In this document: one piece after another, positions 24,401 to 27,400 of the stretch
How positions within the stretch are numbered: position 1 is the first letter of the stretch
Layout of the letters: each line of letters opens with the position of its first letter
Assembly (NCBI GenBank): GCA_904063045.1
Contig: CAJFCJ010000018.1
Location: 372,001-436,000, forward strand
Direction: 5' to 3'
DNA length: 64,000 nt
Source of the DNA: Dimorphilus gyrociliatus
Taxonomy: Eukaryota > Animalia > Annelida
Position numbers and translations under genes: made by a program
Notes under the pieces: generated by a model
The model's database searches: none
What the model was told of the DNA's origin: nothing
Seen by the model: only the letters and a program-made list of their open reading frames with translations

Positions 24401-27400
24401 TAATGATAGGTGTTCAAACAAAAAAGGAATATCACGCAGTCCGTGTTCCTTACGATACGAGTTTATTAGATCAACAATGGGTGAGTAATATTTAATATCA
24501 TAAAAGTGCTCTTTCGTTACTGCCCGGTTCTTACAGCATAGCTTGGCTGTAGTTCATCAAAGCGGCCGAAGACCATTTAGTCAAGACATTTTACATGTCT
24601 ACGTAGATGGAAAACTAAAGTTAAATGTTCCAATGAAAATGCCAAGCTTATCAGAGGTTCACTTAGCTTAAAATATTTCTGTTTTTATTTATTTAATTGT
24701 CTGCTTTAGCCATTTCAACACTGTAGTATTGGTTGTCCAGTTCAAACAAGAGTGTTTGTAAAGGCTGATCAAGTTGTATCTGATGGAAAAAAAATTAATA
24801 TTTCTTTTAATCCAGCGAATTGGAGATTTCATATTAAGAAAGATGGAGATAATCAAAGCGAAGTGCAATCGCATCGGCTTGGTGATGAGGAGAATTGTTA
24901 CGGTCTGCCCGTATCATTCTATGGTCAGATGGGTTCAGTTTGCGTCTTAAACGAACCCCTTTCATCAATGCAAATCCAATCTCTGTATAATGCTGGTCCA
25001 AATTCAGATACACTTTTCATGGCTGATGGAGTTCTGTCTGAACTTAGTTCTAAATTAGTATTCTATTACAACGCGAAGGTATCAAAAAAATTTCAATAAT
25101 ATGTTTGTTTTTTAATTATGTTTAAATATCTAAGGCTTGCAAAGACGAACAAAGTATGGACTTATCTTTGAATAATAATCATGGGGGTTTAATTGGAGAA
25201 AAATGTATAACATGGCATATCAAGGTATGAGAATTGTTTTATGATTCTTATCAGACACCTGACTTTCTTTTCCTCCCTTCAAAGTTTCATATTTTGTATC
25301 CTCGAATTGTTTTAATATTCCACTATAACCGGAATCACTATTCGTATCTTCATATACTTTTTCTCTATCATCTTGACATACTCGAATTTTTATAACTTGC
25401 CAATCCATCTGTAATACTTTTTCTTTTGATTCTAAAAAAAGATCTTTTGGAGGATTCGGCTTTAGCTCTTTATTAAATAAGTCATTTACACCTTTAGCAC
25501 AAACAACTTTGGCATATTCAGTAGCCGCTTGAGACATATTTTTAGTAATCATTTGCATTCCTATTCTGTCTTTTCCCTTGCTTTCTCTCTCCAACTGACT
25601 GAGCATAAACATTAGGCTTTTATTATTGTTACTAAGTTTGGGTAATTGACCAATAGAGTAGCACTTCAGGAAATCCAGTCCAGAAATACAAAATTTTGAA
25701 CAACGTTTATTCCATAAACAGAATAAAACAAATACTATCCCACCAGGAACAATGATACAGATAGTTGCTATAATGGCACTCTATTTCGATTAAAAGTATT
25801 ACATTTAGCTCGAGATGACATTATATTGCGTACGAACCGATGCTTCCTGCGGAATTAAGTGATTAGTAGATGATGTTGACGACATTTTACTTGATCTTAC
25901 ACTGCATATATATATACCAACATAAATGTTCCTGATAAGTTTACTTGTGAACAATATGTCCATATTCTAGACACGCATAATAACTTTAAATTATTGATGA
26001 CAAACATTTATTAAAAATATCAACAGGATGTTATAAATTGCATTGGCGGAGTTTTAACTTTATTTCCTCTTCTTGAGAAGCTCACATACAATAAAAAACC
26101 AAAAACTCAATATAGCCAAGAAACTAGAGACACGGAGGAAAACGAATGGGTTATGCTACCGTCTGATGCAGAAAGTATGAATAATCGGAATAGCGTTGCA
26201 CGATTTTTTTGTCTTTTGAAAAATATGATAAGAGGATCAATTGTCAATGAGGAAACTTTGTTAACAACGGGGAGTGTTGCTATTTTGGGTGCTATGATGC
26301 AACAGATTCCTTCAACTTATATAGATATTGATGTTCTAATGTCATTGCAAGAACTCGTGGAATGTGTTGAGGGATCGGGAAACCAAAGATTGTTGCATCA
26401 CATCTATCAACACTTGTTATTTGATTTCAGAATTTGGAGTGTATCAGAATTTACAGTCAGAATAGGACATATTCAGTATCTTTCTACACTCATAAAGGAT
26501 AATAAAAAGTTTTTCCGTAAAAGATACGGAGTGGAATATTTATTGGATATAATTCGTGTATATTATGAGTCAGTTGTTAATTTTACTTTCAAAGCTTTCA
26601 AAGTGTTATATTAATTTTATTTTTATTCAGAAAAGATGAACTTAGTGGACTAATGATTAATGATTGCAAACAAATACGATCTGCTCTATTTGGTTTAATC
26701 AAATTCTACATATTGAAAGATGTTAATAGCATGGAGATAGATTATATATTTAATTTCATATCAATAGTAGAAGAAGAACCGATTGTATATCATATTATCC
26801 GGATATCACCATATTAATAATAATTTATTACAGCTATCAGAACTTATGGACATGATTCTTTCCGTTTTAGAAACTCCAGAAAAGAGAAGATCTGATCAAA
26901 TTATTTTACTTCTTTATGAGGAAGGAACAGCCGAACTTTTATATATGCTGGTCTCTTGTAAATTATACACAATAGAATTAAAGGAAAAAATTCTAAAGGT
27001 ATTAGAGAAGCTTCACTCTTAAAAAATATTAGTAAATGACTATAATTTAATTTGTAGATAATTGATTTACTTCTTAAATCCTCCAAAGTATCTGAAAAAA
27101 GCAAGGGTAAACTTAGATTAACTGATACCGGTGCCTACCCTGGATTCATAAGTTCACTAGCTGGATCACCTTTGTCAATCAACTGTATCACAATGCTATT
27201 CGATCTTACTATAAATAGTAAGTAATAGGAAATGAATATTTACCGACGCATAACAATTACATTTAGATGCAGCTTCAAGTTTTAATGCTATATTGTACTT
27301 GGTTCAACTTGTGGCATCAGCTGATATATCTATTAAGTTGGAAATTACTAGAAAAGTTAGAAAAACATATCTTTTTTATGTATTATAATTGACTTTGATT

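Follow-up and report, generated by a model that had tools for sequence, protein, structure and literature searches.

A taxonomically restricted gene nested antisense in an NBEAL intron of the annelid Dimorphilus gyrociliatus, predicted to encode a single-pass membrane protein

The nested gene and its host intron

The window analysed here is the whole stretch of 64,000 nucleotides at positions 372,001 to 436,000 (forward strand) of contig CAJFCJ010000018.1 from Dimorphilus gyrociliatus (assembly GCA_904063045.1), and all coordinates are those of this window unless a contig is named. The window is AT-rich (about 33% GC) and carries animal genes with very short introns; the assembly comprises 77.9 Mb in 349 contigs. 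An intron of an NBEAL gene in this window holds, on the opposite strand, a two-exon frame of 202 codons. From the comparison with a diverged relative, together with the single-copy state of the locus, it is concluded that this nested gene codes for a real protein subject to purifying selection; it is neither a repeat nor a viral relic, and its frame is not due to chance. The features of the locus are the following.

25135-25224, plus strand: host NBEAL exon of 90 nucleotides, defined by splice sites and translation and also conserved in the relative
25225-26026, plus strand: host NBEAL intron of 802 nucleotides that holds the nested gene, with donor AAG/GTATGA after 25224 and acceptor AACAG/ before 26027
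26027-26568, plus strand: downstream host NBEAL exon, DUF4704 region (Pfam PF15787 match, 1.2e-18)
25838-25885, minus strand: exon 1 of the nested gene, ATG at 25885 plus 15 codons (16 codons), encoding the predicted extracytoplasmic N-terminus
25781-25837, minus strand: intron of the nested gene, 57 nucleotides, phase 0, from GT (25837) to AG (25781), with in-frame stops inside
25220-25780, minus strand: exon 2 of the nested gene, 186 codons (25780-25223) and a TGA stop (25222-25220)
25712-25780, minus strand: transmembrane helix of 23 residues, predicted from hydropathy
25505-25540, minus strand: NMSQAA(T/I)EYAKV cytoplasmic motif, conserved in the relative, with the sole conserved tyrosine that resembles an immunoreceptor tyrosine-based inhibitory or switch motif (ITIM or ITSM)
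25385-25399, minus strand: QVIKI motif, followed by an acidic stretch, conserved in the relative
25280-25336, minus strand: DxxYxxI-x8-YxxL, resembling an immunoreceptor tyrosine-based activation motif (ITAM), in the tail of this species only
25975-26026, no strand assigned: conserved non-coding block that closes the host intron on its 3' side (81% identity with the relative), 90-140 nucleotides upstream of the nested ATG

The original prediction for this locus described a two-exon antisense open reading frame (ORF) of about 202 residues within the 802-nucleotide NBEAL intron. This structure can be read directly from the sequence as 16 plus 186 codons, and it is indeed longer than the program-made ORF list indicates, which gives only the ATG-started portion of 130 residues. 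The predicted overlap of the nested stop with the host gene is confirmed as well: the TGA extends over the last 5 nucleotides (25220-25224) of the 90-nucleotide host exon, so that any 3' untranslated region (UTR) of the nested gene would be antisense to an NBEAL coding exon. Two hexamers, CATAAA at 25243-25238 and ATTAAA at 25193-25188, are putative polyadenylation signals of the nested gene. An alternative start, the in-frame ATG at 25963, was rejected, since the in-frame DNA upstream of exon 1 is unconserved and the relative has no ATG there.

The median intron of D. gyrociliatus has been reported to be 66 bp in a genome of 73.8 Mb (PMC7854359), the host intron being about 12 times longer; the presence of the nested gene explains this unusual length. 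The same genome paper located ATAC-seq (assay for transposase-accessible chromatin by sequencing) peaks in unusually long introns (PMC7854359).

TATA-like runs lie at 25906-25916, 21-31 nucleotides upstream of the nested ATG, and at 8266-8291 of contig L003 of the relative, 25-50 nucleotides upstream of its ATG. If they were used, the 5' UTR of the nested gene would be just a few bases long; in such AT-rich DNA these runs may be meaningless.

An ortholog in the same intron of a diverged relative

Among 1.84 billion cluster representatives, searched exhaustively with HMMER, there was one match, P0001 (94 residues, E = 1e-4, 37% identity), with a pairwise BLASTP value of 3e-13. This sole relative agrees with the lineage restriction that had been proposed. 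In this and the other homology searches exon 2 served as the query, since the 16 residues of exon 1 do not suffice for a search of their own. Five Logan contigs encode P0001; they come from runs SRR23372216, SRR23372228, SRR23372229, SRR23372231 and SRR31984834, and the four contigs with DNA read are 100% identical over their overlaps.

On the 12-kb contig L003, P0001 is antisense and adjoins the DUF4704 exon of the NBEAL gene of the relative, with DUF4800, BEACH and WD40 exons further on. The ortholog therefore sits in the same NBEAL intron. Its gene model starts with an ATG at 8316 and consists of exon 1 (8316-8363, 16 codons) and exon 2 (8416-8868, 150 codons plus stop), giving a protein of about 166 residues compared with 202 in D. 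gyrociliatus. Ten of the 16 residues of exon 1 are identical, HLIPQE-S among them. The two exons are separated by a GT..AG intron of 52 nucleotides, placed at the identical codon boundary and of a length that is not a multiple of 3. Retention of the nested intron disrupts the frame in both species, through in-frame stops in one and through its length in the other, and thus only splicing joins the N-terminal peptide to the frame of the helix. A frame disrupted in related genomes had been named as an outcome that would speak against the gene; in the relative it is open over 166 codons, with start and intron position kept.

A third, intermediate relative was sought with the host exon, which returned the same relative (85%) and then only distant NBEAL genes of no more than 45% identity. 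The contigs of these distant genes do not date the nested gene, L007 being transcript-like and L008 genomic. In the latter (SRR25503025, 43% identity), 251 nucleotides (L008:932-1182) lie between neighbouring called ORFs, one laminin-G-like and the other DUF4704; this gap, which may correspond to the host intron, is too small for a nested gene. With respect to the host gene of the closer relative, P0001 is encoded without a difference on the SRR31984834 contig, where the DUF4704 ORF was called at 115 residues as against 166 on L003; either the host exon or the gene call may differ.

Selection on the nested frame

Nonsynonymous and synonymous differences per site (pN and pS) between this species and the relative were estimated by the Nei-Gojobori method, exon by exon and without joining exons. 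Exon 1 together with the first 100 exon 2 codons yields a pN of 0.236 and a pS of 0.659 (pN/pS ratio omega about 0.18); all 149 aligned codons of exon 2 give pN 0.338, pS 0.689 and omega 0.24, and exon 1 alone pN 0.15 and pS 0.75. When the same nucleotides are read in the two shifted frames, pN is 0.308 and 0.325, pS 0.391 and 0.371, and omega 0.72 and 0.83, respectively. The differences at the three codon positions, counted over the first 100 aligned codons of exon 2, are 26, 26 and 47, the third position predominating.

The 25 codons of the membrane-helix segment (the helix and the juxtamembrane NK) have a pN of 0.087 with a pS of 0.75, which is saturated, so that omega is not computable for them. 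The host DUF4704 exon, compared between the same two species, is 76% identical in amino acids (pN 0.158, pS 0.81). By these values constraint on the protein is strongest in the membrane helix, which is better conserved than the adjoining host exon (pN 0.087 vs 0.158). The divergence between the two species is deep, and the conserved part of the guest evolves only about 1.5 times faster than the host exon.

At the nucleotide level, identity is 65-72% in the nested exons. It falls to 42% in the nested intron, compared with 71-72% in the exons flanking it, and is 48% in the upstream DNA. The QVIKI motif forms an island of identity within an otherwise unconserved linker (49% nucleotide identity).

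The conserved block at 25975-26026 comprises 52 nucleotides beside the NBEAL acceptor, the other non-coding DNA of the intron being 42-48% identical. It may serve as the branch-point and polypyrimidine region of the host intron, or else as a proximal promoter element for the nested gene. Within it lies a TGTCATCAAT core with a putative likeness to homeodomain sites of the Meis/Pbx type.

With respect to chance, the stop-to-stop frame of exon 2, of 186 codons, is the seventh longest in the window and the longest minus-strand frame between 22 and 30 kb. In 60 dinucleotide-Markov simulations of 64 kb the longest frame had 169 codons, short of the 186 observed, by which chance is excluded within the window. 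The analytic expectation is about 0.005 such frames per window and roughly 6 per 78-Mb genome, and the length of the ORF is therefore by itself no proof of a gene. A chance ORF was rejected on the frame-specific selection described above.

Copy number and database searches

The nested gene is single-copy in the 77.9-Mb assembly, with no paralogue at the DNA or protein level. When queried with exon 2 or with a two-species profile, a word-indexed protein search found nothing besides P0001. Neither the single sequence nor the profile matched Pfam, PHROGs or PDB sequences above chance level. In Pfam, scanned with both orthologs to a limit of E = 10, only unrelated families matched, at chance level, and there was no likeness to LAT, PAG, NTAL or LIME. 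The ESM Atlas contained no relatives of either ortholog, and Rfam had no match over 24000-27000. An exact look-up of the 130-residue ATG-started product found no record in collections that may lack the records of this genome. The nested product thus appears to be an orphan, taxonomically restricted family, seen in this worm and in one diverged relative.

The protein and its predicted topology

Hydropathy reveals one hydrophobic helix and no second one, with a Kyte-Doolittle 19-residue mean of 2.77 in this species (overall 2.8-3.3). The hydrophobic helix of 23 residues of the original prediction is thus present, and it is conserved in the relative. The same is true of the N-terminal 16 residues, which are hydrophilic, lack Lys, Arg and Cys, and show no signal peptide. 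The first 15 residues after the helix have a net charge of +2 in both species. By the positive-inside rule, this absence of Lys and Arg before the helix and the positive charge after it would place the N-terminus outside or in the lumen and the tail in the cytoplasm. The predicted topology is accordingly that of a bitopic type III protein with no cleaved signal peptide.

The conserved elements of the helix region are a mid-helix Pro-Gly, two Cys residues and the CLWNK boundary, and the helix has no charged residue. Beyond it, conservation extends to Cys31, to FLK-x-YS in a hydrophobic and amphipathic juxtamembrane segment, to PKL, to NMSQAA-(T/I)-EYAKV and to QVIKI with the acidic residues that follow. 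A juxtamembrane region with Cys and basic residues had also been predicted. It is present, basic and Cys-bearing in the relative as well, but of the Cys residues at exon 2 positions 21, 27 and 31 only C21 and C31 are conserved, and there is no CxxC. Past QVIKI the sequences have nothing in common: the protein of the relative ends 17 codons on, and that of this species continues for 53 residues up to the host exon.

AlphaFold, run with the two-row alignment, produced a model with a mean confidence score (pLDDT) of 44, with helices at exon 2 residues 2-23, 27-44 and 52-102 and coil thereafter. The conserved EYAKV tyrosine lies within the predicted helix 52-102, at low confidence.

Tyrosine motifs

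Exon 2 encodes five tyrosines. Two of them, Tyr41 and Tyr89, are conserved, and of these only the latter fits a docking consensus. The four tyrosine motifs on which the original prediction had based a phosphotyrosine adaptor are all in the sequence as described, but TEYAKV is the only one with a counterpart in the relative. It reads IEYAKV there, which changes the ITSM-type consensus into an ITIM-type one. The other three (KVYEDT, SGYSGI and TKYETL) fall within the species-specific C-terminal tail of 53 residues. A tail of multiple tyrosines that would dock SH2 proteins is therefore not upheld by the comparison, three of its four motifs lacking a counterpart and the protein showing no similarity to adaptor families.

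In the tail of this species, three motifs resembling ITIM or ITSM are found against 0.30 expected (shuffle P = 0.002), and SGYSGI together with TKYETL forms DxxYxxI-x8-YxxL, with the spacing of an ITAM (tail shuffle P = 0.007); both values are post hoc, since the locus was picked for these motifs. The relative has one ITIM- or ITSM-like motif, which is unremarkable (P = 0.24), and lacks the ITAM-like YxxL/I-x6-8-YxxL/I arrangement present in this species.

Phosphotyrosine signalling is possible but unsupported, and, since it depends on one short motif, it must be considered doubtful. Similarly improbable would be a dinophilid-specific adaptor, independent of the vertebrate ones, in which a newly added ITAM-like pair in this species had joined one ancestral tyrosine of the ITIM or ITSM type. 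If true, such an adaptor would show how phosphotyrosine docking tails come to be built onto an orphan membrane anchor in a spiralian. The tyrosine motifs, if functional, would thus represent a rare invertebrate adaptor of independent origin, which the present evidence does not favour.

Interpretation and alternative explanations

The locus has a two-exon structure with a frame under purifying selection, and its position in the host gene is kept in the relative. Its best explanation is probably that of a genuine, taxonomically restricted gene, on the opposite strand within the NBEAL intron, whose product would be a bitopic membrane protein of 202 residues with an accessory or scaffold role. The helix is the most constrained element, with its conserved Cys, its Pro-Gly and its CLWNK end, and therefore the product is most likely a small accessory or scaffold subunit that works through this helix.

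In the mechanism that we propose, the product would be a subunit of this kind, packed by its helix against a partner membrane protein. Its anchorage at the bilayer is probably secured by S-acylation of two conserved Cys, one at the end of the helix and one at exon 2 position 31. The NMSQAA-x-EYAKV helix and the QVIKI-acidic motif may present binding sites for cytosolic factors, and the tyrosine-rich C-terminal tail would be a species-specific addition.

Several points weigh against this explanation. All of the evidence is at the level of sequence, and the conservation consists of one pairwise comparison of two species at which synonymous sites are saturated. The spliced product of either species is absent from the protein collections searched, which may lack the records of this genome. 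The transcription start is uncertain because of the short distance between the TATA-like run and the ATG, and the structure model is poor, as its pLDDT indicates. For a function as a partner subunit, the pattern of constraint is the one line of argument.

According to the adaptor explanation, Src-family kinases would phosphorylate the ITIM-, ITSM- and here also ITAM-like tyrosines, on which SHP2, Csk or SH2 proteins of the Syk/Shark type would dock. The best-conserved cytoplasmic stretch does contain (T/I)EYAKV(V/I), which fits the ITSM/ITIM consensus in both species, the excess of motifs and the ITAM-like pair in the tail point the same way, and the type III topology and juxtamembrane Cys resemble those of LAT- and PAG-type adaptors. 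However, that excess carries post hoc P values, and neither three of the four motifs nor the ITAM-like pair is found in the relative, whose single motif is of the kind expected by chance. The conserved tyrosine is placed in a predicted helix and not in a disordered tail, although at low confidence. Moreover, YxN and CxxC are both lacking, the helix carries no charge, the Pfam scans gave no homology to adaptor families, and constraint peaks in the membrane helix and not around the tyrosines. This explanation is consequently unlikely, although less so than the two that follow.

The conserved blocks might instead be non-coding, either as splicing or regulatory elements of the host or as an antisense non-coding RNA, with an open frame that is incidental. 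The locus is known from genome sequence alone, its intron also contains a clearly non-coding conserved block (25975-26026), and about six chance frames of equal length are expected genome-wide. However, the substitutions are frame-specific and in excess at third positions, and the selection analysis against a related species, which the original prediction had proposed as a check, gives omega values of 0.18-0.24 in frame and of 0.7-0.8 out of frame. Furthermore, 202 and 166 codons are open in two genomes whose neutral sites are saturated, and the start codon and the frame-restoring intron are both conserved, which leaves a non-coding origin of the conservation very improbable. An origin from a transposon or virus inserted in the intron, as a fragment since decayed or domesticated, has nothing specific in its favour beyond the fact that long introns are common landing sites. 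The gene is single-copy at the DNA and protein levels in a 78-Mb genome and has no Pfam or PHROG match, a transposon or viral match having been another outcome named as adverse. Its position, orientation and exon structure are kept in a deeply diverged relative. Such an origin was rejected for a gene that is single-copy, syntenic and without a family match, and its probability is close to negligible.

Comparison with known systems

The vertebrate lymphocyte adaptors LAT, PAG/Cbp, NTAL/LAB and LIME have, like the predicted topology of the nested product, a very short ectodomain without signal peptide and a single helix, followed by Cys and basic residues at the cytoplasmic face and by a longer tyrosine-bearing cytoplasmic tail. 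However, the nested protein is from an annelid, it lacks sequence similarity to them as well as CxxC and YxN, it has one conserved tyrosine motif, and its best-conserved part is the helix and not the tail motifs. With the inhibitory receptors of the ITIM/ITSM class it shares (S/I/V/L/T)xYxx(I/V/L) in the cytoplasmic tail of both species, a motif found by chance in about one quarter of such tails (P = 0.24). Unlike these receptors, it has an ectodomain of 16 residues and no Ig or lectin domain for ligand binding.

DAP12, FcR gamma, CD3 zeta and the ITAM of fly Draper invite comparison because of the small single-pass design, the tiny ectodomain and the DxxYxxI-x8-YxxL in the tail of this species. 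However, the helix of the nested protein is free of acidic residues, an extracellular Cys for a disulfide dimer is lacking, and the ITAM-like pair is absent from the ortholog. Accessory subunits of the KCNE, FXYD and phospholamban type would resemble it in size, in bitopic layout and in constraint on the helix and the cytoplasmic boundary. This likeness is one of design only, since neither homology nor the signature motifs of these families are found in the nested protein. The gene can therefore be described as coding for a putative orphan single-pass membrane protein, for which a LAT- or PD-1-like adaptor role is at best partly supported.

As a nested gene, it follows the arrangement of other animal genes nested in antisense: it is complete within one host intron, lies on the opposite strand and is conserved as a single whole, and the length of its host intron far exceeds that of the neighbouring introns. 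It differs from other nested genes in that its stop, and whatever 3' UTR follows, overlap with coding sequence of the host, and in that the arrangement has been kept across a deep divergence. Because of this overlap, the pair is a possible case of coupled expression. With this locus a compact annelid genome gains a well-supported gene, which is also a clean example of what appears to be an orphan membrane protein kept by purifying selection across a divergence that saturates silent sites.

Other genes of the window

Two further frames of the window were assigned to families. On the minus strand, 36773-38041 is a frame of 423 codons with SH2, C1 and RhoGAP domains, corresponding to a chimaerin-type gene. 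On the plus strand, 9538-10251 is a C2H2 zinc-finger frame (zf-C2H2_15, 3.6e-21) with, in addition, a sub-threshold match to the FOXP coiled coil.

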